DNA from: Dimorphilus gyrociliatus
Lineage: Eukaryota; Animalia; Annelida
Assembly: GCA_904063045.1 (NCBI GenBank)
Contig: CAJFCJ010000006.1
Span: forward strand, 3,054,408 to 3,118,407
Direction: 5' to 3'
DNA: 64,000 bases
Both the position numbers and the translations under genes were made by a program. Shown piece by piece: positions 4,448 through 60,900 of this stretch. The stretch's first letter is position 1, and every line of letters starts with the position of its first letter. The notes below the pieces were generated by a model, which was given only the letters and a program-made list of their open reading frames with translations, made no database searches and was not told where the DNA came from.

Positions 4448-6310
4448 ATGATTTTTTATTTTATAGGATGAAATAATTTTACTAGTCAGTAACGTTTTTT
4501 TTTAAAGAATAAGCTCGTACTCTTTGAATGAAACGGTCCAGTAGATTTAGACGCTTAGTTCTGTTTGTTTTTCTTCCTTTTTTTACTGTTAAAAATTTTT
4601 TAAAGATTTGTATCTGTAGGTATTTCGAAGTATTGCTGTTGGTGCTAATGAACGAACATAGATTATTCAGATGTAATTTATTTCTCATGCTCTTTTGTCG
4701 TATAGCTTTTATACAACTTACAAAGTATATATATTTATTTACTTATATATACTATTTTCTCTTCTATTATGCAGTTTACATTTAGAATCAAAGATAAACA
4801 TTATTTTTAGTGTTTTATCTCTAGTTTATCCTGTTCGTTCTCTCTAAGTAGTAGATGCATTTTGAATATGCCGTTTTAATAATGCAGATGGTCAGATACC
4901 GATATAAAGTATATAGGTACAAAAACTTGTTTTTAACAACTGAGGACTACAAAAATACTTAAAAAATTTTTGAGTAATTTTTTAATAGTGGAATGCTAAA
5001 AAAAAAATTAACATCAAAATAAGATGTAATAGAAATTCAAGCTAATCTGCTCATCTGTTCTAAGAAACATAACTGCTTAATTTTTGTTACATGAGTTTGT
5101 TTTCTCTTTTTTTTTCTATTTCAGTGAAATATGCATAATGTTTGTTTTCGTACGAGTTCAAAAGAATATTAATTCGTACTTGAATTTATTTTAGATTTAT
5201 CTTGAAATGATAAAAAAAAAGAAAAATCAGTAGTTAACTTAATATAGACAAAAGTATAAAGGATAAAACGATGATATTGTATTGCTTTCGCTACTATACT
5301 ATTTTATCTATATAATGTTGACTTACTGTTTTTTAGATTTAATAATCAATGTTTTATATATACACATATTTGTTTATGTAAGAAAAATAAACGTCTATTC
5401 TTTTTGTTTGTCTCAAGGTCATAATTAAGTTTATCATGCATGGCTTATTCTTTTATATATATATATAAAAGAGTGTTACGAAGCATTATGTTTATTTTTT
5501 ATTGTTTTCGTGAGCTTAATAACCAAAGATTTGTAAATGTAATGTAACGAATTTTTCTTTCAAATGATTTAAAAAATTCGTTAAATCTATAAAGAAATAT
5601 ATATAAAAAAAGTGTTGATTGTAGGAGAAAAAAATCAATAAAATATTAAGTGTTCAATTTTGAAAGAAAACAACAACAAACAAACAAAAAAAGTGAAGGA
5701 ATGTATTATGCAAATAGATTAAAAGAAAAAACAGAATACTTTCTATATTAGTATACATATTTATATTTATATATACAGTATATCTTACATTACAAGTATA
5801 TATTTATATGTATTGTTTATGTTGCTTCTCTTACTTTTGCTTTCTACCATAAAAGTCTTTTAAACTTGTTAGCATTTGTAGAATTTACCTTTTTAGTATA
5901 TACAGTATATTTATGTATAAAGTATATGCTTTTAAAGAAAATTGTAATATGCTAAATGGAAATAATTGTTTAAAGGATCCTAATGAAAACAATAAAGATT
6001 TCTCTTTTTGTATTCTTATTAATCTATTGTTATTTTTCAACAAAATTAATAACTTATTCATTTCATAATAAACAGACGAAGTGTATTACAGTCACGCACC
6101 AATCGACTAGAAATGATATAATTAAACAGCGTCGAAAAACTTTGAAAAATGGACGGTTTCAATGTATATACTGTAAAAAGTTGTATATACCTATATTACA
6201 TATATATAAAACTATAAAGAGATGTACATATATATGTAATTATAGTTTTAAAAAAGCATTATATTTATTGCGTGTATCGATACAAAGATAGCACTTAAAT
6301 GTAATATCAA

Positions 6311-9300
6311 CTAAGCGTGTTGTTGTTGTATTAAAAGTGCCTGTTGCCTTTCCATTTCGTGTCTCTCACGCAAGGCTTCTAAATCAATTAATTCAGGAGT
6401 TTCTTCTACGTTCAAATCGACTCCATGAGTAGGACTTTTTTGTTCTTTAGGTTTTTGTTTCGGTGGTTTTTTCACCTGTTTCGCATACTGCATTGCTTTT
6501 GACCTTGCGCTAACAAGATCTTCTTTATCTAGGTTTTCTAAATTAGGTCTGGAAGACGACTTCTTGATACCTTTAAGGTCTTGACGGTTTTTTTCTTGCA
6601 CTTGTTTAGCATATTCTTGTTTTCTTTGAGCTTTTTCTTTCTATATATTTGAACAGAGTTTTAGAAAAAGGGTGCTTTACTTTTGATATATATATATACA
6701 GTATACCTTATCTCTAAGAGTTTCATTATCCAAATCGGGTCCTAAACCCCCCAATTTCACTTCTCTATTCATCCTCTTATAATCCTCAATTGTATAGATC
6801 TGATAATTCTTTTCATTCTTTGCTCTCTTCTCCTCTTTCTGCTTTTCGATTTCATATTGCTCAGCGTAAGTAAGTTGTTGACTTTTAGGCATTTGATGTC
6901 TGGGCGTCGGTTTTATGTCCCGAGGTGTTTGATTGTCTTCTGTACTATTTGAAGGAATTGGCGGTAGTACTCTATATGGACTTTCGACAGTTTGAATACT
7001 ATCGGCGCTATTTGGAACTTGGGCAGGCATAGTAAAAATATCTGCCGTCTGATGAGCGAAGAAATCATTTTCAGACGATCGACGTTTGTACCATGTTGGA
7101 ACCTGAGTTGAAACTTGAGTAGGTACCTGGTAGCCCATCTGCTGCTAATTAAAACAATAAGCTAATCAAATATCTAAGGCTTTTCTACAAATAGATACTT
7201 ACAGGAGCTACGGGAACCTGCTGTTGTACAGCGCTGGGTTTCTTACTTAATTTCCTTTTATTACCAGAGCCGTCTTTCTGCGTTGCCAAGCTTGTCGATC
7301 TATTTTTCCATAACCTCTCAGCTTCACTTTGATATTCCTCATCACTAGCTTCCTGGTTGATAAATTTTTCAACATTCCTTGGTTTTTGAGCCTTCGGAAT
7401 TTTTTCTTTTCGCCTAGGTGTTGGTGAAGTCTGCTTTTTCTCTGCAAAGATTTGACCGTAACTCTTTTTTTGTTGCTTTTTATTTAAAGATTCAATGTTT
7501 CGTTCGATAAAATCTTTTGAAAAATTTTCCCGGTTCTTTTCACTCTGTTCTTCCGGTTGCTGAGCGTACTTTAAATATCTCGGATCAATTTGATTGTTGG
7601 AAGCCTATTATAAAATTATAAATCAATTACAGTAAGAAAATAATTAATAAGGATACTCACTAAGGATGGATCGGTACTCTTTGGTACTGGACTTAATTGT
7701 TGCGCCATCTGTTGCTGTTGAAGTATTTGTTGCTGCATCATCATAAATTGTTGCAATTGTTGCTGTTGTTGCATTTGTTGCTGTTGGATATTACTTTGTA
7801 TGACTGCTTGTTGTTGCAGTTGATGAGCAAGTATATCTGTTGATACTCTTGGAGACTTTTCTTTAAACCTTCGTGGTGATTTTAAAGAATTAGGAGGATC
7901 TAAGTCGTCAGAGTCTGAATCATCCGAATCTGTATCATCAAAATTTGCAGTTTTTTTAACAACTTTTCGAGTTCGTTCCCGTTCTTTTCGTTTTTCTTCT
8001 TCCAAACGTCGTTTTAGTTCTTCTTGTTCTTGCTCTTTCCTCCTTTGAATCTCTTTTTTCCTAAGTTCCTCTTCTAACAATTTTTTTCGCTCCAGCTCTT
8101 TTTGTTTCTTCCTAAATTCTTCTCTTGCCAATTCCTCCTCCATAAGTTTTATCCTCTCCTGCTCTTCGTATCTGTTTAGTTCATTTTGTAACTTTTGCTG
8201 TTCAAATATCTGCCTTTGCTGGGCTCGTTTTTCCTTTCTAGCTACGAATAACTCGTGAAGCTCTTCCTCGTCCTCCCTGCGCCTTAGCTCCTCCAAACTC
8301 TCTCTTGACGGTTGGGTTATTGTTGTAACATTACTGGTAGGATTGCTATAATATCTCTCTGATTCATAATCCAGAGAATCAACAGGAAGAGGTTCGCTTT
8401 CTTCATTCCTTTCCCATTCATCACTCTTATGCATATCATTTTCGTTATCAGCTATCCGCTTTTTTAATCGCTCTTGATACATTCTCTCCTGCTGTAAATC
8501 TTGCTCTTCCTACCAAAAATATTTTTGCGTTAAGTACACTAGAATTGACACTAACAATATAATTGATCCTTTTATCGATAGTCTATAACAGTAGTAATTA
8601 CAAAGGAAATGTTATAAAAAAGTATTGCGAAATAATCCAGACACATAATGCCAGTAGTTTGATTTTTAAAGATTTTCAATAGTGTTTGTTAGGAAGAAAG
8701 CAAAGAGGGGAAGGGGGAAAACAAAAAACAGCAAATTTCATTGAAAAGAAATAATAAGAAGATAATTCGATTGTTAAGAAAAACAAAAATATAAAAAGAA
8801 AATGACCTAAAAATCAATACTTCACTTTTTAAATAAACAACACACCTGCTCTTTTTTGACCTGTGCTTTCGAAAAAGGTGATTCGATGGGTTGAACGGGC
8901 TTACTAACTCTAAGCAATCCTTGAGGCGGCTAAATAAATCGTGACAAACGAAATCATAACACTCGAAAAACAAAACAAATTAAAATATGATGGTAAAAAA
9001 ATAATTTTTTCTCTTTCGACAAAAAAGCAAACGAATATTAAAATAGATTAATTAAATATTTACTGTTGAATTTATTGTTGTTGTTGTTGCTGTTGATAAT
9101 CCTTTGTAACTTCTATCTTCGTATCTGAGAAATGAAGAAGAAGAATGAAAGGTAATGGAATATATAAATAATCAAACGGGTATTAACATATAGTATTTAC
9201 CTATCCGAATAAGCTGATATACTTGATGGTTGCTTAGGTCTTATCCTTTCTATGGGCTTTATTTTTTTAGCACTAGTTACTTCTAGAGAATCATCAACGT

Positions 9301-19909: not shown

Positions 19910-22900
19910 TCAGAGTGGTAAACTTGTGGGTCTACACACCCTTGCATTTGGTGGAGCTATCAAATCTACGTGTTCACTAGATGGCACAGCACCATTGCTA
20001 TCTTGAGATATAAGTGGGCGGTAATCTATTTCACTAGAATCACTTGCAGCAATAGATTCATTGTTGTTGATTGTTCTCAGCGAAGAATTAGAAGATAACG
20101 TTAGCTCCAAGACCTTAAATCTCTCTTCAACACATATACCAGTTAACCTAGCAGCATCATCAGCATCCCAACATTCTTGTATGGTCTCAGAAATATCCAT
20201 AAGAATATTAGAATTTAAGATTTTACAATTAATGGAAGGTCTCATATTTTGTTTAACAGCAATAAACTGCATAGATTCTAAATTGGCTACCATTCCATTT
20301 AACTCTATTTCAAAAGGCAACAAATGCCTGTTATTGCTGTAAACATTCAATATCTCCCAAAGAATTAATGATAAAGAGTATATATCTGCACTTCTTAAAG
20401 AAGAACTCACATCACCCATGTTAACTGTACCATCCAATAATTCAGGTGCCATGTATCTGGTTGTGCCGGCGTTTATAAGTCCACTGTCCATTTCGTTTCC
20501 AGCAACGTGACCTAAACCCAGATCACATAATACGCAAGATGAATCTGCTCTAACAAGAACATTGGTCGAGGTTAAATCCCTATGGGCAATCTTATTCTGA
20601 TGAAGGAATGACAGAGCACTGGATAGAGTAGACATTAACTTTATGGTTTCGTCTAATTGTAAGTCGTTATGGCTGGATAGGTAGTCTCTTAGAGAACCAC
20701 CTGGTACATATTCCAATACCAATTTCATTAAGTCATCTTTCATAAATGAACCGAAAAATTGTAGTATTCCTTGGTGACGCACACCTAAATTATCAAGGTG
20801 TCGGTAGATCATGACCTCCCTTGAAAAATGGTTAAAGTTTTCTCTGCAAAATGATTTAAATATAACTAGTTTATCTCCCATAGTAGCAACCCAAACATCT
20901 CCATATCTACCAGAAGCGATCAGAGATTCTGGGGTATAACTGGCTTCAGTTAAAAACTCAGTACTAAATTTGGTCGACTTTTCACTGTGCTCCTCAAATC
21001 GGCTTCTAGAGCACCGCTTCTCATATGTACACACTCGATATACTGAATAGCAAATAATGACAATAATTGAGAAGATAGCCAAAACTGCCAGCGGTATTAA
21101 AACTTTAATAATATTATTTCTTCTACCCTCTAAGTTGGATTTTTGTGAAACCTTTTGCGAATCATTGTCATTGCCGTAGATGTCACTTTGCTTGTGATGG
21201 GTCACATTAAAAAAGTGCTTTGGGTTAATTTTATCCTCCGAATTACAATAGTTTGATTTACAACAACAAACTTGAACGCTTCTCCCATTAGGATGATATT
21301 GAGTTAAACATTCGTTGGTATCATCGCAATTATAATCTGGTGGCCATGACTCAATGTCCAGACACCCTGAACTGTAGACTTTTACCTTTTTTGAGGCATT
21401 TTTCTGAACAACATAGTGCGCGTAACATTTATGAGAAGGACTATGGCAACGTATTGTTAAATTAGAATAGAAAATTATTCCTCCAAAATCCTTATTTGAA
21501 ACTCCAGGGTCATTGGTAAAATTTTTATCTGGTTTATCGAGTGTAGGATAACCACGATTTCCGTTGTTTGTGAATTTGCAGGAAATGGTCTCCTCTTTCT
21601 TATAGACTGCTGCGCCATCTATAGGATTAAAAAACCATTATAGTAAACTAAATTAACAACAAAACAGCATTATCCTGAGGAAAAAATTACGTTATCATAG
21701 TCGAACATCTAATTAAGCAAAACAAACTAATAAATATAACAGTGTTTTTTGTATATACTCTATAAAGATAATTAGAAAATCTCAAATTAAAAAAAAACAA
21801 AGATAGAATAAAAGGTCGGCAGTGTCAGATTTTTTTTTCTGTTTAATTGTGAAAGAGATATTTTTATAACTAATGCATTTATTCAATAAGTAAGTGAAAC
21901 TTGTTAATTTGTTAGAAAACATTCTATGTGGCCTGTAAAAATTTAATCCGTTTGAAAAAATCTAATTTTTCTCTGAATTATGAGTGGCTGTTAGTGTTTT
22001 CTAAAAGCCTTCTATTATAACATGTAAATGTCTGCACGTTTTTAATGTTTATTGTAATAGACGAAGAGTATTTTGTCTTATATTATTTGATCTTAATAGA
22101 TTCATTAAAATATGTTGTAAACGAAAATCATGGCTCTTTTCAATGTGGAATAAATTTTGAAAGAACAAATAATGAATATCAATAGTTTAGGGAAATTCGG
22201 TTATAATATTTCTCATTCGACCTTTTCATATAACTGTTTATCATGCTATAGTATTCAAAATAACGGCAATAACTTTTAGTTTAAAATTAACAGGTGAAAT
22301 TGATGGGCTTAAAGAACGATTAAAGGTTAAGAAGAGAGATATTTCAAGATTTCCGACGCGATATTTTCAAAACCTTTTAACGCAAGTTAATAGTTTATAT
22401 TAAGCATACACCTGCGTAATCGCGTAACTCGAGTTGTATCAACGCAGTTATCAACGACAATAGTCAGTTAATTTGATCTTATTTGGATAGTGTTCGGTAC
22501 AAAGAAAAAAAATAGAAGAACAAAAAAAATTCTGTTAATTAGAACTGCAATCAAAGCAATATTGTTTTGCAAGATATTATAATCGAATAATTCGACTGTA
22601 TCGAGATTTCTTTTACTTTGAGCCCTCACTTTTTCATCGATTGTGAATGCCATTAAGAGAGTGCAGAGAACATTATTGTAATTTATTGTTGAATTACTCT
22701 AAATGGCTATGAAATAAATTTATAGCAGATCCAGTATCTTGAATTGACAGTATTTCATTTTAAAATGTCTTTAAGAAAACAAGGTGTCGTCAATAAAGAT
22801 AAACGGTATGAACAGTCGCTCAAATCAATAAAATAAACATGCCGTTTAATTTGTGATCAACATTGGAATTGTTTAAACAAAAATGCTAAATACTGAATAT

Positions 22901-48041: not shown

Positions 48042-48398
48042 ATGGGGTGCGGTTCCACTCGCATCCACACCACGCCTGTCTCTAATGGAAGACAGCATTC
48101 CTACATCGACTTTCCACTGGTAAGGCGGTCTAGAACTCAATTCTCTCATTTGTCAGCGTCCATTCAAAATGACGAAGAGAGTGTCAAGATAATTATGAGT
48201 CCAGATTGTTCGACTATACAAATTGAAATGGTCTCATTCGGTTTAGACGGGACAGCGGAAGCCAACAACGACGGCAATGAGAATGGAACCTCTAATGACA
48301 CACTTCAACCTTGTAGCGCTAAAAAAGATTCAACCAAGAAGCCTCGGAGCGTACAAAGCGAAAAGAAGCGAAAATCATCTTTTGGTGAACTGATTTAG
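48042..48398 (+). CDS. Orphan 118-aa protein with an N-myristoylation/palmitoylation start (MGCGST)
   Basis: GC-richer than its flanks with an uninterrupted ORF; MGCxxS/T lipidation motif; basic C-terminal KKRKSS. A donor-like GTGAAC near 48385 means it could be only a first exon. Confidence 0.65.
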   Translation: MGCGSTRIHTTPVSNGRQHSYIDFPLVRRSRTQFSHLSASIQNDEESVKIIMSPDCSTIQIEMVSFGLDGTAEANNDGNENGTSNDTLQPCSAKKDSTKKPRSVQSEKKRKSSFGELI

Positions 48399-49332
48399 TA
48401 AACGGGGAACACTTAAGAAGAAAAGATGGATAAAATTACGGAATAAATACAATAGCCCGTAGCGACCAGGCCCTAGATCCAGGAGGTATCTTCATACTTC
48501 AACTTTTTTTTATTCGTTGTTCCAAGAAAAGAGAAAGACGCTAGAGGGCGTTCATACAAGAATTAGTGCTATTAATCATTTAATTATTAAACGTTTCCTT
48601 ATAATAAAAAAAAGAATACATTTAGTTAAAACCTTAAAGAGCGAATTAGTTAACAAAAAGTGAATTGAAATAGTTCGCATAAACGATCGCTTAGCGTTGT
48701 TTGTTTATTTATTCTGGTCTATAAATCATACATTTAACAACTTCAGCTATTGTTCTATTAAAGACCATAGGAGGAAAATACAATATCTACCTATATACAT
48801 ATATAAAATAAAGAAGAAAGAAGAGAAATCCTTTGGGGGTGGCTAAAATCAATAATATTTTTTCTACATAATAAATTTTATATAGGTTTTATCATGATAA
48901 TTTAAGATTAGGTATAATTTTAGAGTTCATTTAAAAGACTACGTGTAAGCTAGGAGGGAATACTGTGGGAAAGGTTGAAAAGAAAACAAAAGTAAAGAAA
49001 GAGAGAAGATAGAGGAGGGATTAAACGAGATGTTATAAGTGTAAAAATGACAATCTATTTATAAAATCTTAACATTGAGCTATTTGCTTTTAAAGTATAA
49101 AGAAAATAACAAAATATCCCAACTATAGTGTTTTTCTTTTTATTAGGAAAAATCACTTCTTTTCATTTTGAAGAAAAATGCATTATGAGACAGTCCTCTT
49201 CAATAGTGACTATTCTCTTCTAATGACGTCTAATATAAGCAATTTCTCTCTATTCCTTCTAATCTATAATCAGTTTATTTTATTTTTCCCTTTTAAATAT
49301 TTATGCTAAATTTGGTTCTTCCTCTTACTAGA

Positions 49333-49485
49333 TAAGGTTTAACGGGGCGTAGTATAGAGCTCGTTCTCATTGGAAACGTTAGACACCAGTAAAGAGACGC
49401 TATCAATCAACACTCAACTAGATGGTTTACTCTGGCGACTGTGATAGCACTTTCGTCTGGAGACGCCCCAAGGACGTTAAATCTT
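49333..49485 (+). repeat. 153-nt GC-richer element with terminal inverted repeats (structured RNA or MITE remnant)
   Basis: 49333-49344 pairs with 49474-49485 (12 bp, one G-U); 49345-49350 pairs with 49463-49468; internal arms CCAG/CTGG, AAAG/CTTT and GCTATCA/TGATAGC. TA at both ends. Confidence 0.5.
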
Positions 49486-50478
49486 AACAGAAAGTATTTT
49501 GTCCAGTTAAATGTTTACATTACACTGAGGGGAATAATTAAATCCTTTAAAAAGTTCACATTCTTATCCATTTCACTTTTAAAATACAATATTATTCATT
49601 AACCTATTCAAATTAATGAATTATTTTCAATCATTAAAAGGTTGTCTTTGTAAATTATTTTAAAAGCCTCTTCACTCCTCTCTTCACTACTTTTTTTCTC
49701 AATTTTTTTTTTAAAAAAAAAGGCCAAATAAAAGATAGAAGTTTTTATTCATTAAAACACCATTCTTCACTCGATCCACTCATTCCCTTTTTGTCACTCT
49801 ATCACTTCTCCCTTAGGAATTCGGATTGTTGTAGAATATTAGCGCCCTGATTGGATACTTTCAATCGAAACAAGAGATTAGTAAAACGTTGTATATTGTT
49901 TAATGTAATTTAAAGGATTATAGGCATATTTTATATAAACATATCAAAGATTACATTCATTAGCATTATTAAAGATACCAATAAAACTTAAAAGTTTTTA
50001 GTGACGCCTTTACAAAAACAATTGCAATAGAAAATTTATTATTCTTTAACACAATCTAAATTTATTTTTTTGATACGCCCCATTAACAAGCTATGATTTA
50101 TTATGTAATCTATGCTCCAATTGCAGACTATTTATCAGTTAAAAAGTGCATTATCTTAATACGTTGGATAATTAAAAAAAAAATCGGTCACAGTAGCATA
50201 TAACCTTATGAAAAAAATTACTTCTTGATAAAATAAAAAGATAACATTTTATAAATCTACAACGTTCTATTATGTGATATACAGTATATACATATATACG
50301 TCTACAACTGATATAATAGGATTAAGTCTGTATGTCTTTAAAGATTACACATTAATAGAAATTTTCTAATTCACAGTAAAATCAAAGGTTTAATTAAGCC
50401 AAATTCTGAAAGAAAACCATATACGTATATAAAATATGATATTTAATTACTCAGTAGCAGATGGGTTATAACTTAAGC

Positions 50479-50485
50479 TATAAAA
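50479..50485 (+). promoter_or_regulatory. TATA box of the peptide-precursor gene
   Basis: TATAAAA about 30 nt upstream of an Inr-like TCAG (50511) and 40 nt upstream of ATG 50519. Confidence 0.65.
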
Positions 50486-50518
50486 GGAGGCGTAAGAAAC
50501 GCTGTACAATTCAGAATC

Positions 50519-51051
50519 ATGAAGTTTCTCATTGGTTTTACCCTCTTCTTTCTCTACTTAATATATGTCCAAGGATTTCCCGCAACGGTAGGCCGATTTG
50601 GATTAATTAGATTAACATTTTTATTTATTAATTAAATCTCTTATAATTCTTTTTTGAGTCTATAGCAGTATTTTCGCGAATCTTTGTCAACAAGTAGTAG
50701 TGAATTGAAACGAAATAAGAATAATAATAATTCTTCAAAGCCTCTATGGATATATAGTAAGCTGATACAGTATTAGCACGTATAAACCGTTTATTAAAAA
50801 TTGAATTCAGTGATGGGACACCCTAGTTATAAGAGATCGCTAAATTCAAAATGGCTGATTGAGAAGAAGAGAATCAAAAGCTTACTTGAAGATTTTCTTG
50901 CATTTCTTAATTTAAAAGGTGAGCTATTTTGTGTTACTATTATTATGATTACTATCGTACTTTTCTAATTTAGAAGAATAAAATAGAAGGACTCTTTTCA
51001 GATTTAGGCCTCCTCTCTCAATGTTTTCCCAATAATCCAAGAAGTTCTTAA
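50519..51051 (+). CDS. Secreted neuropeptide-type precursor, galanin/GMAP-like, 105 aa. Exons 50519-50587, 50666-50756, 50811-50918, 51002-51051
   Basis: Spliced product MKFLIGFTLFFLYLIYVQG-FPATQYFRESLSTSSSEL-KR-NKNNNNSSKPLWIYMMGHPSY-KR-SLNSKWLIE-KKR-IKSLLEDFLAFLNLKDLGLLSQCFPNNPRSS. Signal peptide, dibasic sites, three canonical GT-AG introns with phases 0/1/1, TATA box. Confidence 0.8.
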
Positions 51052-51226
51052 AGGAACAAGAGTAAATGAAATCCTAAACCCAAATGAATAAGAAACAATA
51101 CATTACTTAAATTAAATACACGTGTTTGCTATCACATCAATTTTAAATGTATTCGTGATTCAAACTATCGAAACGTGAAAAAGCGAAAGAATGAGAGATC
51201 TCCTATTATCAATTACTCTTTCTAAG

Positions 51227-53576
51227 CTATTTGAAACTTTTCGTATACTTTACCAAAATTTTCGTAAAAAGTCTGAAAGTAAATTAGATATATTTATTAA
51301 AAATTTAATATATTATTAAAAATGATTTTATAACTAAATGTAAAGCTTACTTTAAATAGGTCACAACCCTGTTTAATAGATGAAACATCGCACATTTCTC
51401 TGATCGAATGCATCGACAATTGAGCTAAGTTGATAGTGAAAAAAAATGAAAAACGTTTATTCTCTCATTTAAAATAAGAAAGAATATAAAAAGCTCACGA
51501 GCTCCAATATCGATTGTTGCCATTCCTAATTTTGCTGACATTATAGGCCCAATGGTACTTCCGCATAACGAATCGTTTCGGACAACGAAATCTTGAAGGG
51601 GAACTTGAGCAATTTGAGCAATTTCCCTCAATATACCGGCTGTTACTAAAGTAGTTGCGTAGCGTTGGTTTTGGTTGGTTTTTATCACAATTCCCTTTTT
51701 AAAAACAAATACAATAAAATATAGATTTTCACAATGTACAGATCTTTTTTTCAGTAACTACCTTATGCAAACTTGGTTTATGTTGATCTTCATGCTTGTC
51801 GGGATAGTTTGGGTGCACGGCATGAGCCATATCCGAGGAAATCATCAACGATTTAGATATGGATTCTTCAAAAGCTACAGGATTTGCACCTGAAGATAGT
51901 CTTCGTAGAATCAACTCTTGAATTGTTGACATAGCACCCTGGGCACTTTGTGATCCGACTTCTTCGTTATCGAAAAGGCTTACCATTCTTATACGTGAAT
52001 CAGATTTCAAGGAATCGTGCCCAAGGGAATTTATCAATCCCTAGAATAAAATTACTCTTTAACGACTCCCTTCTGAATATTTTCTCTTTCTATTTAATCT
52101 TACTTGAATTGCACAATAGCTTGAATGGAGATTATCAAGCCTTGGAGAGAATATAAATTCTTCGAGGATACCACCAATTGCCTACAATGAATTAGTGGAT
52201 AATTTTGAAATTAAAAAAAAAAACAAATAAAATATTCATACAGCTGGTTGGGTGTCGGCCAAGCATAACTCAAAATCTACAATCTGTTCTGGTCGAATTC
52301 CTAATTCTTTACAAATCAGTTCAATAAGAAGAGGTTGATGCTTTTCTTGCTGTAAAAATTGTTAATAATCAATCAAAGTGGATAAAAGTTGAAATTATGT
52401 CCTTACTGCTGATAGTTGTCCGGATGACTCGGCGCCAGAAGATTTAACACCCTTTTGCAATTCTTCTTCAATGCTAGTTGCCAATACTGGTAACCTTTAC
52501 AAATTAAATGTAAAAATTATTGGAGAATATATATATTTTAAAGGGAAATTTTCAACCAACAAGTTAGTTTCTTTATTCCATTCAAACTTTGTACCCATTT
52601 CTCGATTAAGGTGAATAGCCAAATTTGGTACTCTCAAGATAGGTCTCTTAACGTGTATAAGTTTTTGTACTATATTGTCGTTGTTCTGTTGTTATGAAAA
52701 ACAAAAATTAATATTGTTTTAATGTAAATTTAGTTTTCTTACTTTAACCAAAACTCTGCCGGCAATAGTTAAATCTCTATCAAACCATGTGTGCCAGGTT
52801 CCACCTAATTGTTTAAATTGATAGTAGAATGATAATATTACATTTTTAATATTAATTTACCTCCATAACATTCAACGCCAACTTGAACGAATCCACTCTT
52901 TACTTTCTTAGATACTGGTTTTACTCTAAGACAAGGACTATCAGTATGAGCTCCAATGATTGAGAAACCATTACCAGGTTTATAATTTCCGCCCACTGCA
53001 AATGCTATTAAAGTTGACTTGTTCTTCGTCATATAGTACTGTTTAATTTTTAAGGATTAAGATTCCTCGAGGAAAAAATAGATAAATCATTCTATACCTT
53101 ATCAAGTGGCTTTATATCCCATTTTTCGCTTTCTTTCAATTCCTTAAATCCTGCTGCTTCCAGCATGGAAGCACTTTCATGAACAGCTGTAATTGCGACT
53201 CTTTTATTGAAATCATCAAATAATCAACCAGTTGTTATTACTTCTTAACTTTATATATAAAGTGAACTTTATACTTCTTACCATGATAAGGAGATGGAGA
53301 ATTATTAATGAAATTTATAAATCTCTTTGCAGCAGTCAGTCTTGAAGATTCCGAGGCCTGGATTTGGGATAATTAGAAGGAAATTTAAACTTTTTAAATG
53401 GCAGAATAAACACTTTAATTGATAAAATAAGCTATATTAAAGTACACTCAAGGGATAATTATCGAAAAGTCCAAAGAATATGCATTTAAAGTATTTTTAT
53501 ATAAATATAGTTGAATATGAACTAATAGAATAAAATAGTTAATTAAATATTAGAGTATAATTTAATTAAACACCAT
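51227..53576 (-). CDS. DNPEP: Aspartyl aminopeptidase (M18), about 10 exons, probable ATG-only first exon
   Basis: [96 protein letters not shown]. Confidence 0.96.
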
Positions 53577-53999
53577 TTTGGAATTCAGGTTAGGAGCACA
53601 GATTAAATTGTAATCAGCGCTGACTTGACACAATCAACGTTGAGAAATACGGGTAGAAAAATGTTTTCTATTCAGAGAACATACATAGAACCCGTAACCA
53701 TCTAACAACGAGATCTCGTAAGTATTACGTATATAAACAAGAGAACTATTGCTCAATCTCTTTTGTAATCCGAGATTTGGTAAGGTCAAGGCTATTAGAT
53801 ATTTCTTGCAAAACTATAAAGTTTTTGAAAATAGTAATTCTAACAAAACAAGACATTCTTAGATAATTTTGCATTATCATAAACAGAATAAATTATACCA
53901 TGTTGATAATCATACTGTATTGAAAGGAGTGAAAAAGTTTAGTTTTAGTTTTACAAATATTGTTAGTATTACACTTGATATTGTTAACATATTGAGAAA

Positions 54000-55868
54000 C
54001 TATGCACAAACTAGGCGTATAGCCTTAATAATCTTCTCCAGGGGAACGTTCTCCTCACAAACATTAACCAAATTGAATAAATGCCTCATTGCGTAATCAT
54101 TCTTCGATAAATCGAAACATGTTGCATCAAAAAATTTAGCTGCTGGTTCATAACATTCCCATTTTGTTAGTGGAAATCGTGTTTTACCATATCCACCGTT
54201 TCTGCCGGTTGTTATGGAAACGATATCCCTCATTTTAACTTCAACATTTCGCCTTCTCATGGCTTCGTCACGAATTTCTTCGGTTAATTTTAAAATCTCG
54301 AGAGTATTTTTTGTTGCAACTAGACGTCTCTTCAAAATTTCTATTTTAACGTCTTCTGATTTTACAGCATCCAAAGGAACGTTTGGTACAATTTTCCTAT
54401 ATAGAAAAGAGGCAACGTTTATAATTTAGATCTCATAAAGAAATTTTAAAAATCTATACTTTTGAGTATTCGTTAATCCTTGGAAAAAACCAACAGCTTC
54501 GTTTGCAATTTGCATGTCACCGAACTCTTGTACATGACTGGTGTTCGTTTCCTCTTTTACTAAGCGAAATTGTCTGGCTAACGTTTCAGTACTAAGATTT
54601 TCTTTGTCAGAATCTTCCATCCATTTGACACTGTAAACATCTCCGAGGAAAGTCTGTCTGGCTTTGTCAAAGTAGCAAGCGTATGAACTCTCTTCGCTAT
54701 TGGCTGCAGTAGTAGCGTATATATTGATATTGGACGGTAGTAAATTCTCAAACATTGAACCAGATTCGCAAGCTTCAACATAAATGACCATTTGAGCAAA
54801 CTTATTTTCTGAGTACATTGATTTCAAGACTTTAATAAGTTGGCTGGCGTATAATTCTCCATTGGGAAAAGCTATTAGACCAGGAGCTCCATGATCAACA
54901 AAATTAACAAAGACGTGATCGTTGGGTCCGCTCTGAATAACTTTACCACTTCCAATACCTTTCATACCGTCAAGATCGCCAGCGAGAACTTTGAGAAAGT
55001 TTTCAGGAGTAACAGTTTCCCCTAATTTTAAAAGAAAATTTATAGATCTTATTGCAAAAAAATGCGATTAGCAGAAATTTAATCCTCTGTTAAAAAAGAA
55101 CTTCTGGGAAAATAGGTCAATTGATTACTCTGTATTGTTATTTATACGTAATTAATTTTTCTTATCTAAGTACAATAATTAGTTAATTTCGTAACGAATT
55201 GATTAGTCTTTGCTATTGTTTTGTTTTTTCTTTTTGTTATATAACATAAACAACAAAAGAAATTCGAAACTTAAATTCAAATCTTAAATAAATTTACCTG
55301 TATAATCTTTAGGAACACCGTGGTACACATCGCTACCATTCGGATGATTAATAACAATTCCAGGGGTTGGATTTCTATTTTGAAACGAGAAAAAAAATCA
55401 TGTGACACTTGAAACTTTTAAAGAATTCAATCGATTTTTACTTGGAAAAAGAATACTTACTCCTGATTTTCCGCTAAATCATCATACATCATAACAACAA
55501 TTCTTTCATCAGGTAAACCATGGCTCTTCAATATTTGATATGCGTGACAAGCGTCAGCCTGGAAAGAGTAAAAATAATTGTTAGTATCATCGTTAGTTTA
55601 ATTTTTTTTCTCAACTATAAATAAAGAGCTTTTTCGCTAGAATACTTTATAGTTTATAGGAATTTTTCTAAAAATAATATCGTACTTGGTGTCTGTAGTT
55701 AAACCAACCATTAGAACCCGCCACGATAAGAGCCCAATGTTCTCCACCATTAGGTAGTTGATCTTTCAATTTTAAATCGTCTCCATTTCTAAACATAAGA
55801 AAATCTGCTCCGAAACAATTGGAGCAGAGAAGCGCAATTGATATGACTGTTTTCAAAATTAAAGTCAT
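54000..55868 (-). CDS. LGMN: Legumain (asparaginyl endopeptidase, C13), 5 exons
   Basis: Signal peptide; [24 protein letters not shown]; catalytic DHG and EACES; YATTAAN..ESSYACY; C-terminal prodomain with conserved cysteines. Confidence 0.96.
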
Positions 55869-55932
55869 AGTTAACTAAAAATACTTTTGCTTCGCAACTG
55901 CTTAGTTAGTTCTCTTATATATTTGCTAATGG

Positions 55933-55942
55933 GTCACGTGAC
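55933..55942. promoter_or_regulatory. CLEAR/E-box upstream of legumain
   Basis: Perfect GTCACGTGAC 65 nt upstream of the legumain ATG. Confidence 0.7.
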
Positions 55943-56270
55943 AATCATATGACTGACAGTCACGACGACAAGGAACCATATTATTAGGCTGGATGACCTT
56001 AACCCCTATTAGTAAACTTGCGAAATAATAAATGTTTAAGGGAAAAAATCCGAAATAAATGATTTAAACTTGCTTTAAGCAGAGTCAATAATCAAAATAA
56101 ATAAATAAATAGATATGAGAGAACAATTGGAAATTATTATAAACATTATTTATTTTTATTGTCAACTATTCTTTAATAATTTAAGACGAATTTATAAAAA
56201 AAACCGAACCAATTTTAATTCTAACCCATTAAAGAAAATAAATCTTAATTTACAAGAGTCAAAAACAAAG

Positions 56271-57227
56271 CTAGGCCTCTGGTGAAGTATTTTCTTCTTT
56301 TTCAGGTTCGTAAGTTTGCAATCTCATCTTCAATTGCCCATTTTCTTCAGTTAATTCTTCGACTTTTCTTCTCAATTCCGAAACCTGAAGAAATAGTAAT
56401 AAATTATTTATAAATTATTGCCACAAATGTAATCATACCATAAAAATTATATTAAAAACAGATTAATACATTAAAATATGATGTATTTTTTATTGTTATG
56501 AAAATTTATGTATCAATTCATCTATTTGAATTCTTTATGGTTCTTTTATTATTATTTAAAAATCGAAAATTTTTTTTAAAATACTTGTGATTATATAGAG
56601 ATATTGGAAAGAGTTTACATTCTCTATCTTAGTAACAACGTGACAATCCCTTAAAAATATCGATCGCCTTGTTTACAATCTAGTAAGTGGATGCTTGAGA
56701 TCAAAAAAACCTAAACAGATAAGGTATTTAAATTTTGTTGTACCTCTTTTTTTTTTTTACTTCCCTCAGCTGGAAGACATTTTTTTTATTTGCCTCAGAC
56801 ATTTTTTTAGATGAAATTAATCTTTTTATCACTAGCGTTGCTATTATCAACAAAATTTGATAGTTTTTTAAACTAAAATATATTAATTAATATTATAGGG
56901 AGTGTTATATTTCGTTAGCAAATCTAGAGCTAAGTGTTGAGATAAACGCTATGTTTTGATATTAAGTTGCTAATGTTTGAGTTTTTTACTGACATGTCAT
57001 TAAAAAAATGTTAGAGAACAAACCTCCAATTTCAAAGCTTCAAAATCAGCAGATTCGGGACCTTCGCTGCCTATATGTTTTTTCAGATAATCTAAAGCAT
57101 TATTCGGCTTTTCTGGTTCTTCGTAGAGACCCACCAAAACCTTCGTCATGCTGTCGATGACACCAGCCTTTTCTAGATATTTCCTAAATTCTTCACGCTT
57201 TGAATCTGCTGGTTTATATTGGCTCAT
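56271..57227 (-). CDS. MYCBP: c-Myc-binding protein (AMY-1/FAP174), 105 aa. Exons 57227-57024 and 56384-56271
   Basis: YKPADSKREEFRKYLEKAGVIDSMTKVLVGLYEEPEKPNNALDYLK followed by a coiled coil; phase-0 intron. Confidence 0.95.
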
Positions 57228-57882
57228 TTTTGCCGAAATAATAGGTTGTCTTTACACGTTAAAATTAACTGTTTTTTCCTCAACGCGCTTTTTCCGTCCG
57301 TTGCTAGACGATACTTCGCATGCGTCAACGATTTACATATCCGGTCATGACCGGTTTTGTGCTTTCTTTTACTTTTGGTTACCGGTTTATTCAAACGTAC
57401 ACACCTTTTATAATAAAGACAGCATAGTAGTTAATAAATATTATTAAAACAGTTACAATAATTTCTCACGTAGGAAATAAATTTATTAATAAACGTATCG
57501 AGGATACATTAAAGTTTAAATTTTGTTTTTGAGCATCAACATTCTACTGAATAAAGTTTTTAGCATTAGCTTTTACTGTGTAAGAATTCTTAATATAATT
57601 AAATAACTGATAACGAAGATAGTTTTGTAAAAGCTTAACTTCTAGACTTAAAATAAATAACTTTTTTTTAAATAAAATTTCAAACATTTGAAATTAAGTT
57701 AATTTAGGTCGATTCGAAAATATAACCTTTAATTTTATGGTTTAATCCATAGAAACTATTTCATTGCTTCTTTGTACAAGTCCTCTATTGCAATAGCAAT
57801 AATCATATTCAATTTGAGACTTAAAATTCTCTTTACAATGATACGATTCGGAAAATTTATCCGAAACACTTGTTTATTTCTG

Positions 57883-57906
57883 GTCACGTGACGTGGGCGC
57901 ATGCGC
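57883..57906. promoter_or_regulatory. E-box/CLEAR plus NRF1 module at the septin promoter
   Basis: GTCACGTGAC (57883-57892) and perfect GCGCATGCGC (57897-57906), about 35 nt upstream of ATG 57940, which is followed by T and a GTAAGT donor. Confidence 0.6.
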
Positions 57907-57939
57907 AAAAAGTGGCGCTACTTGTGTGAATCACGGAGA

Positions 57940-60900
57940 ATGTGTAAGTAGATGATAAATCGTTAAAATTATTGTTCCTAACGCATATTAAACAATTTTT
58001 TTAGTTTTCAATCTATCGTGATCTGAATATTGTTAACTGTGAAAAATTTGATTCAATTTAATTTAAGAGCTCTTATGAGAGGCGGCTATTTCTAAGCTCT
58101 TTATGACGGTCTTTATCCGCATCAAATATATTTATAATAAAAATATCCAAAAAGTTGCCACATTTAACCGCTCTTGAATAATGGGATTTTTAATTAAATA
58201 ATGGCTTCATAATGTAATGGTAAATTTTATAATAGATATTAATTTTATTCAATATATTATGTGAAATACGAAACACTAATATTTGAAAGGTACTAGTATT
58301 ACCCCCCCTCCTTTAACTGTAAGGCTATATAAATACTAATACATCCGTATGATGTATTTTACATTTAACCGAGATTTTTAAGATAGTTCTTATTACCCGC
58401 TTGAATCATCTTGCTTTGTATGAAACTATTAATATTCTATTTATGAATAATTAATTATTTGATTGATCTATGAAATATTCCATGCTTATATTTTTCTGCT
58501 TAAAGATTTGGCTTTTAAACAAAAACGAATTCATTCTTTTTTTCTCTTGGAATACTTTTTGTTCTTTTAAAGTATTTTTTAGAGAAAAATTGACCTAAAT
58601 TTCACCACTAATATAATTTGTTCTTTTTTTTCACTTTCATATTCCTCATTCACAATCTCCGACGATTATAAAAAAATTGCACAAAATAGCTGTAAGTATT
58701 TATATGCACTATTACATTTTTCTCAGTATAATTGTTTTTGAACTTTGACTAATTGTTATTATTATTATTCTCTTATAATCGTATGTAAATTTATTGGCAT
58801 TATTCTTTAGTCAATAAAACTGATCGCTATCCTGCTATCTAATAATCCTTGCTTTCTCTCTTAAAGAAGAGAAATAAGGTCAACTTCGAAAAAGTTATAT
58901 TGACTCAGAAATTGAGAAAGTTCTGATGGTTTAATTATGAAATTGAGAGGAATCTGTAAATATTTGGTCCTCAATGCAAGGCCTTTAAGCCAATTTTAGT
59001 AGGCCTTCCTATTTTATTCATTCAAAAACTTATACCTGTTGGCCACAATCAGCCGATGACTGCTAGCCAAAATGCAGAACAGTTTAGAGTAGAAAATACG
59101 AAAACAAAATTTGATAATAGAAATTGAGTTTTAAATGAAAATCTATTTTGCAGACAATAAATTCAGCTAAACGCGAGGCGTTCTTCCGTTCGCCACCTTC
59201 CGACATACCTAGTCAACAATCGTACAAAACAGACTATAATTATCGTTACGATATGAATTCAAGAACCGCAAATCTTTCTAAATTGCCACAAGAAATTGAC
59301 AGAATGGGTGAACAGAAAATGGTTAGCGATTCTACCTATGTTGGATACGCAACATTGAGCGATCAAGTTTTCAGAAGAAGCGTTAAGAAAGGATTTGAAT
59401 TTAATTTAATGGTAGCAGGTGAATAATTGTTTACAATTTCAAGTAGGGCTGCTCCATACAATACAGAGTCTTTTATTAAACATGGAAGGTAGTTTAGAGT
59501 TAACAGAAAGCCTTTTGAATCTTCGAAGTTCACTCTATTATATTCTATTTACTGTATTCTCTATATACAATTGTTACCCCTATTCCCATTCTATTTCAGG
59601 TGAATCGGGGCTTGGAAAATCGACTTTAATTAACTCCCTTTTTAATACGGATATCTACGATCTTAAAGATCCGAGTAAACGAAAGTTACGTAAGACAGTT
59701 TCGGTAAGTGAAATTTTGCAAAGTTAGAATAAAATTTACTCTATTTTATTGTTCGGTAAACAAAGTATAGCCAACCGAAAATTTATTGTAAATAAACCAT
59801 TATCTCGTATATAAACGTATAAAATATAAAAGTGTTGAACTTTTAACTAATTTTAGGCTTTGGCAAATTTACTTATCTCCTTTGTACTATTGATGAGTTT
59901 ATTTACAAATTTCAATTTAATTCTATTTACAGGTTGAAACTAACAAGATTATTCTGAAGGAGAAGGGTGTTCAACTTCGTTTGAATGTAATTGATACGCC
60001 CGGATTTGGCGATCTTCTTGACAATTCCCAAAGTACAAATCCAATCGTGGACTATGTTAATGAAAAGTTTCACGAATACTTAACGCTTGAATCGCGAGTT
60101 AATCGTCAGAAACAAATAGCCGACAATCGAGTTCATTGTCTGCTCTATTTCATCAGTCCAAATGGACATGGTCTGAAAGAAATTGATGTTTTCTTTATGA
60201 AAAAATTGCACGACAAAGTCAATATCATACCAATTATTGCTAAAGCGGATACAATGACATCTGAGGAATGTGTTTTGTTCAAAAAAACTATTCGAGAAGA
60301 AATAGCCAAGTTTGGTATCAAAGTCTACGAATTTCCGGAAGTTGAAGAAGAAGGTTATCCAGACCACAAAAATTTCAAAAACAGAGTACCATTTGCTATT
60401 ATTGGAAGCAATGTTATGATTGATAACGATGGTAGACGTGTAAGAGGAAGGAAATATCCATGGGGAGTTGTTGAAGTTGAAAATTTACATCATAATGATT
60501 TTTTGGCTCTCAGAAACATGCTTATAAGAACCCATATGCATGATTTAAGAGATGTCACCAATAACGTTCATTATGAGAATTTTAGATATGCAACTTTATC
60601 TGAAAAAGGAAGATTGGACTCAAATACTTCCACTGACTCGTAAGTTATCGAACAACAATGGTGATAAATATTTCTATTTTCCCCTTCTGTTGTTTCAGTA
60701 GTCCATTGTCTCAAATGGAAGAAGAAAGACAAAACCATGAAAATAAAATTAGAAAAATGGAAAAGGAAATGGAAATGGTATTTCAAACAAAAGTCAAGGA
60801 GAAGACTCAAAAAATTCACGAATCTGAACAACAGGTACTCTTAGTCAATTTTCTAGTTAATAAATATTTCAGGTTTCAATTTTTACTCTTAGATGCTACG

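Follow-up and report, generated by a model that had tools for sequence, protein, structure and literature searches.

The window analysed here is a stretch of 64,000 nucleotides from the forward strand of contig CAJFCJ010000006.1 of Dimorphilus gyrociliatus (assembly GCA_904063045.1), and all coordinates refer to it unless stated otherwise. Its plus strand carries a small gene whose coding sequence, as translated from the genomic coordinates, totals 315 nt, or 105 codons, over four exons. The sequence reads as a TATA box, TATAAAAGG, at 50479-50487, 32 nt upstream of the ATG, and would provide the promoter element. Exon 1 (50519-50587, 23 codons) opens with the ATG at 50519 and encodes the predicted signal peptide together with the first four residues of the propeptide. 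It is followed by intron 1 (50588-50665), a GT..AG intron of 78 nt in phase 0 that ends in a tandem acceptor, TAG|CAG. Exon 2 (50666-50756, 30 codons plus 1 nt) encodes a spacer peptide, a first KR site at 50708-50713 and the start of the candidate peptide, which on translation and two-species comparison consists of a variable N-rich beginning and the conserved residues SSKPLWIY. Intron 2 (50757-50810; 54 nt, GT..AG, phase 1) splits the first Met codon of MMGHP. Exon 3 (50811-50918; 2 nt, 35 codons and 1 nt) translates into MGHPSY, which closes the candidate peptide, then the second KR site (50831-50836), a linker peptide, a KKR site (50864-50872) and the first 15 residues of a GMAP-like stretch that begins at 50873. 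Intron 3 (50919-51001), of 83 nt, is again a GT..AG intron in phase 1 and holds an acceptor AG at 50972-50973 that is not used. The coding part of exon 4 (51002-51051; 2 nt, 15 codons and TAA) completes an Asp codon and continues with LGLL, a single Cys and NP[RK] before the TAA stop. For comparison, the median intron of the D. gyrociliatus genome, which is assembled in about 350 scaffolds, measures 66 bp (PMC7854359).

This four-exon model reproduces exactly the residues given in the first-pass annotation, including the KR, KR and KKR sites and a candidate peptide of 21 residues. RNA support comes from one public run, X1 (2017, Logan contigs), which is the only run found to contain the stretch. 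It behaves as RNA, since the contig that covers the peptide gene carries nine further joints of the CT..AC type to its right. Within 49000-53000, this single contig of 1962 nt joins 50587 to 50666, 50756 to 50811 and 50918 to 51002, in each case across GT..AG, so that the three introns predicted from the sequence agree with it to the base. The last of these joints shows exon 4 attached at the distal acceptor, 51002. An alternative form of the protein, which would use the acceptor at 50973 and end in LKEE-stop, is absent from the contigs of run X1, although rare variants are lost in such contigs. The 1962-nt contig has its left end at 50532, immediately behind an Illumina adapter, and the first 13 nt of the coding sequence (50519-50531) as well as the transcription start lie outside its coverage; by implication, the 5' UTR would have to be very short.

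On the other side, a putative 3' UTR occupies 51052-51272, with an ATTAAA at 51111, and the contig passes from exon 4 straight into the aspartyl aminopeptidase gene, which is convergent and lies on the minus strand; the introns of that gene appear as CT..AC from 51272 onward. That both genes are found in one RNA contig implies that their 3' UTRs abut or overlap, within about 170 nt. The contig depth of 982 is common to the peptide gene and the aminopeptidase transcript and thus says nothing about the level at which the former is expressed.

The NCBI annotation of contig CAJFCJ010000006.1 in GCA_904063045.1 holds no gene call between 48398 and 51222. Its upstream neighbour there is a 118-aa product (ORF 48042-48395, an exact match in the assembly), and the next model downstream is a 943-aa product combining a legumain with an M18 peptidase, at 51222-55868 on the minus strand. 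The absence of the gene from the annotation agrees with the null result of a search with exon 3 (35 aa) against 1.84 billion representative proteins, which returned no match at E<=0.001. We conclude that the locus is a genuine, transcribed and spliced gene that the public annotation of D. gyrociliatus has overlooked.

Three features of the surrounding DNA may be recorded here. Upstream of the gene, in an otherwise unannotated stretch, run X1 has three unspliced contigs of low depth (5-14) at 49111-50236, which may represent background, carried-over genomic DNA or an extended 3' UTR belonging to the 118-aa gene (48042-48398). The legumain (Peptidase_C13 plus prodomain) and Peptidase_M18 model at 51222-55868 on the minus strand (13181-17827 of L009) probably merges two adjacent genes of the same strand. 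Farther away, at 19913-21205 on the minus strand, lies an ORF of 431 aa that is 100% identical to DgyrCDS4947, a kinase of the TGF-beta-receptor family; with no match above 38% identity beyond the close relative described below, it is a rather divergent receptor kinase.

Further searches for relatives of the protein were run on single exons of 23-35 residues. With exon 3, the ESM Atlas gave nothing at >=0.9 and no galanin or GMAP family, and the PDB sequences gave no match at E<=10. A word search of 5.8 billion proteins with the ORF at 50801-50965 (55 aa, exon 3 plus intron read-through) brought up no candidates; since it sees only proteins of 30-96 aa, a full-length relative of 105 aa would have been invisible to it. 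Single-exon queries of this length make weak searches, and together with the size range of the word search this makes the orphan status of the protein a weak negative. [quoted passage not shown] No paralogue was seen elsewhere in the 64-kb window. The gene at 56271-57227 also encodes 105 aa, but its product is c-Myc-binding-protein-like and unrelated.

An orthologue was found in a close relative of D. gyrociliatus. The search with DgyrCDS4947 had retrieved a Logan protein with 85% identity, and the neighbouring aminopeptidase exon (86% identity) then served as a handle for recovering the relative's genomic contigs, L002 (run SRR23372228) and L003 (run SRR23372216). Exon-wise tblastn on L002 and L003 places all four exons of the orthologue on the expected strand, directly after the aminopeptidase (DNPEP) gene and convergent with it, in a locus that is collinear with 50061-59244. 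The amino acid identities amount to 18/23 in exon 1, 20/29 in exon 2, 24/35 in exon 3 and, over its first 13 whole codons, 7/13 in exon 4, so that about 30% of the residues have changed between these two close relatives. In the DNA alignment every GT donor and AG acceptor is kept, as is the reading frame, and the split codons read ATG in both species at intron 2, and GAT and GAA, respectively, at intron 3. Before the tail, the only difference in exon length is one in-frame CAG (Gln) codon, missing from the relative's exon 2 at the tandem acceptor. Apart from this codon the exons are aligned without a gap, as against 76 gap columns in intron 1, which measures 155 nt in the relative and 78 nt in D. 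gyrociliatus, and 68 in intron 2. In exon 4 the relative keeps the Cys and has a tail 11 residues longer.

Codon counts made exon by exon give a dN/dS of 0.24 (pS 0.51, with 31.2 differences over 61.5 synonymous sites; pN 0.18, with 42.8 over 238.5 nonsynonymous sites); for exon 1 alone, pN is 0.09 and pS 0.33. An orthologue with this ratio indicates a real gene rather than a chance arrangement of signals. Conservation extends upstream, the 173 nt at 50306-50478 being 82% identical (142/173) to L002, compared with 47-71% in the introns, which also have large indels, and 56% in the 3' flank. This putative promoter region includes two TAATTA cores of the homeodomain type, at about 50392-50397 and 50445-50450 (within 50388-50401 and 50440-50453), that are unchanged in the relative, and the TATA box TATAAAAGG is identical in the alignment with L002. 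The comparison of the two species thus identifies a functional gene under purifying selection, with a promoter that appears to be conserved as well.

The runs that yielded the orthologous locus also contain a second, AT-rich aminopeptidase locus, represented by L004, L005 and L006 (runs SRR23372228, SRR23372229 and SRR23372216). Its neighbours are different, SelO lying upstream and a tetraspanin gene downstream, and the peptide gene was found to have no orthologue beside it. Either paralogy or the presence of another dinophilid species in the samples could explain this locus. Exon-like matches at the distant DNPEP loci, L004-L006 (72% identity) and L007-L008 (61-69%, GC about 0.40), had E values of 0.1-0.9 and were discarded as noise; those in L004 have stops within and form no gene. 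The relative also differs in gene content. L002 bears, at 5979-6944 on its minus strand, a 321-aa Fe-hydrogenase-like ORF (NARF-type) that sits between the legumain and aminopeptidase genes in an extra segment of about 3.1 kb, and tblastn finds no trace of it in the window, where 53333-54006 is the corresponding place.

The protein has the general features of a proneuropeptide, namely an N-terminal signal peptide and dibasic sites that are conserved between species, and the prepropeptide layout proposed in the first-pass annotation is upheld as far as these two features go. By inspection, the signal peptide comprises M-K, a hydrophobic core of 15 residues and V-Q-G|F-P (I-Q-G|F-P in the relative), which fits the -3/-1 rule and predicts cleavage after Gly19, at 50575|50576. 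The three KR pairs, LKR, S[YS]KR and E[KN]KR, have all persisted in the orthologue while their flanking residues differ, KKR being replaced by NKR. The best-conserved mature stretch is SSKP[L/I]WIYMMGHPS. Conservation is also seen in FPxT(Q)YFRESL just behind the signal, in W-L-I-E-x-K-R-I-K-x-L-L-x-D-F and in L-G-L-L-x-x-C. None of the predicted peptides ends in a Gly for amidation.

With moderate confidence, we read the gene as encoding a secreted prepropeptide of 105 residues, apparently restricted to its lineage, that is cut to peptides. Residues 1-19 would serve as the signal peptide and be removed after Gly19, and the remaining propeptide would be routed to regulated secretion. Prohormone convertases would then cleave it at each of the three conserved KR sites, a carboxypeptidase would remove the basic residues, and four non-amidated products would be released. 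The likeliest signal among them is the second, or rather its conserved core SSKP[L/I]WIYMMGHPS within the 21-mer, which would probably act on a receptor. As to the machinery, D. gyrociliatus possesses 7B2, a processing chaperone, along with a full complement of neuropeptides (PMC7854359). Points against this reading are the lack of an amidation Gly, the modest enrichment in KR and a difference between the two species in the C-terminal residue of the core peptide, Y versus S; the N-rich start of the 21-mer varies as well. A precursor is nevertheless favoured over a folded protein by the presence of only one Cys, by spacers that are poly-Asn or Ser-rich and by the retention of sites and cores while the spacers drift.

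A possible, though clearly less probable, alternative is that a small protein is secreted uncut. It could come from a gland, the epidermis or the egg, belong to a matrix, or serve as a carrier or in sorting, and its KR pairs would be ordinary residues of a Lys-rich protein encoded by an AT-rich genome. The signal peptide and the conservation fit such a protein equally well. The enrichment in KR is modest, Lys preceding three of the five Arg in 80 residues, and an amidation signal is absent. Moreover, conservation is not confined to one peptide, since it includes FPxT(Q)YFRESL behind the signal and the whole C-terminal third. However, an uncut protein would not readily account for three KR pairs that all persist amid changing residues, and one Cys along with low-complexity poly-Asn and Ser-rich segments would make a stable fold unlikely. 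That the locus is transcribed but yields no functional translated product, being non-coding or a very young gene, is most improbable: a homologue is seen in one close relative only and the start codon lies outside the RNA contig, but the frame is kept over four exons, whose only indel is one in-frame codon against the many in the introns, dN/dS is low and conservation extends to the start, the splice sites and the region of the stop.

The first-pass annotation had considered a different ancestry, in which the gene is a preprogalanin- or GMAP-type precursor retained in a protostome. The gene would then be a true homologue of preprogalanin, coding for a galanin-like and then a GMAP-like peptide and kept in an annelid beside allatostatin-A. 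We regard this as very unlikely. In its favour is the C-terminal stretch, for which an ungapped match of 9/20 to a 20-mer given as human GMAP had been reported. The arithmetic of that match is right, with a BLOSUM62 score of 43, and the relative reaches 8/20 with a score of 42. The 20 residues compared span the junction of exons 3 and 4, with 15 of them in exon 3, and the GMAP core to which they are matched is F-L-x-F-L-x-L-K-(D/E)-x-G-x-L, corresponding to ...EFL[SA]FLHLKEAGAL of GMAP. With the rat GMAP core as printed (PMC3516677), the D. gyrociliatus stretch agrees at 8/19. When exon 3 alone is compared with rat GMAP(1-41) by BLASTP, this single pair scores 18.1 bits, with an E value of 7e-4. 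Composition-preserving shuffles attain the observed ungapped score in just 1/5000 cases for D. gyrociliatus and 6/5000 for the relative, and the human 20-mer gives a score of >=30 with none of the 35,838 stop-free 20-mers in the six frames of the window. The similar size and order of the parts, and the presence in both genes of introns inside the peptide and inside the associated peptide, also speak for homology.

Several considerations weigh against these figures. When the pairwise statistic is scaled to known precursors, roughly 30,000 residues in all, our calculation yields about 0.1-0.5 chance matches per gene examined, before allowing for many genes; the GMAP match is thus only nominally significant, as it fails correction for the few hundred precursors it could have matched. 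Two of the nine identities have changed from L to M in the relative, whose stretch matches at 8/20 positions. GMAP is a poorly conserved, fast-evolving part of its precursor even among vertebrates (PMC3516677), and with some 30% of residues altered between close relatives it is hard to see how 45% identity could have survived since the bilaterian ancestor. A separate check gave the C-terminal stretch a low Eisenberg hydrophobic moment, 0.18-0.23, for which reason we do not call it a clearly amphipathic helix. The Pfam-A models are silent. In hmmscan at E<=10, with exons 1-3 of the window and exons 1-4 of the relative each submitted singly, there was no match to Galanin and none to GMAP, including exon 3 of either species, where it must be noted that HMMER filters hide most matches above E of about 0.1.

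The candidate peptide does not help the case for galanin. Galanin begins directly after KR with the near-invariant GWTLNSAGYLLGP (GWTLNS-type), which is needed for receptor binding (PMC12749109, PMC3516677). This N-terminus is absent here; the sequence directly after KR is N-K/Q-N/K-N/D-N-N-S-S-K-P, and a Trp stands two residues before the Tyr, versus seven in galanin. The supposed echo of galanin's YLLGPH in YMMGHP reduces to Y..G, worth about 11 bits by our estimate with ungapped BLOSUM62 parameters and to be expected by chance when 30 residues are compared with 105. The introns do not coincide either. In vertebrates, the junction of galanin exons 3 and 4 falls between residues 13 and 14, after LLGP (PMC12749109). 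When YMMG is aligned with YLLG, the peptide intron of the present gene comes after the Tyr aligned with Y9, in phase 1, and is therefore displaced four residues upstream of the 13/14 position. Of the preprogalanin layout that had been claimed, the order of the parts is indeed similar, but a linker peptide and another dibasic site, the third, intervene ahead of the GMAP-like stretch. Finally, the species has a normal allatostatin-A precursor. The link to galanin and GMAP is thus unproven and probably coincidental. The C-terminal resemblance to vertebrate GMAP, as judged from these alignments, is most likely due to chance or convergence between short hydrophobic segments rich in Leu and Phe. The evidence favours instead the second alternative of the first-pass annotation, a new peptide family: a new, apparently lineage-restricted orphan prepropeptide.

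Read as a prepropeptide gene, the locus adds a conserved and expressed precursor to a model annelid whose neuropeptide complement had been described as canonical and complete. It also illustrates that cleavage-pattern mining and the annotation of the genome both miss genes made solely of exons shorter than 40 codons. A signalling role of the peptide, if it has one, would make it a candidate ligand of an orphan receptor in this animal. Should the galanin/GMAP interpretation be true after all, it would bear on the evolution of the galanin/allatostatin-A system. A true preprogalanin relative would mean that the precursor architecture predates the split of protostomes and deuterostomes and coexists with allatostatin-A in annelids.

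The accepted protostome ligands of galanin-type receptors are the products of allatostatin-A/buccalin precursors. These are likewise secreted precursors with dibasic sites and occur in the same animal. The allatostatin-A of D. gyrociliatus, however, is encoded by a different gene with many copies ending in ...FAGFG-KR, whereas the gene described here is devoid of repeats, of an FGL-type ending, of Gly-KR and of an amidation Gly. Vertebrate preprogalanin has the same order of signal, short spacer, KR, single non-amidated peptide, KR and C-terminal associated peptide, and likewise one intron in the peptide and one in the associated peptide. It differs in having five coding exons, versus four here, and in the presence of GWTLNSAGYLLGP. 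GMAP has about 59 residues and directly follows galanin and one KR (PMC12749109), while the C-terminal peptide has 31 residues in D. gyrociliatus and 40 in the relative. The GMAP-like stretch is here preceded by a linker of 9-10 residues and KKR or NKR, and vertebrate GMAP has no such linker. The third comparison is with the orphan or lineage-restricted proneuropeptides of spiralians, those of annelids having been catalogued by cleavage-pattern mining (method in PMC7854359). The present gene shares with them a precursor of about 100 residues, a signal peptide, conserved KR sites and fast-evolving spacers, and likewise has no detectable homologue outside a narrow clade, here on single-exon searches. 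It differs from them in that its candidate peptides are single-copy and non-amidated, and in that it is missing from the published D. gyrociliatus list.
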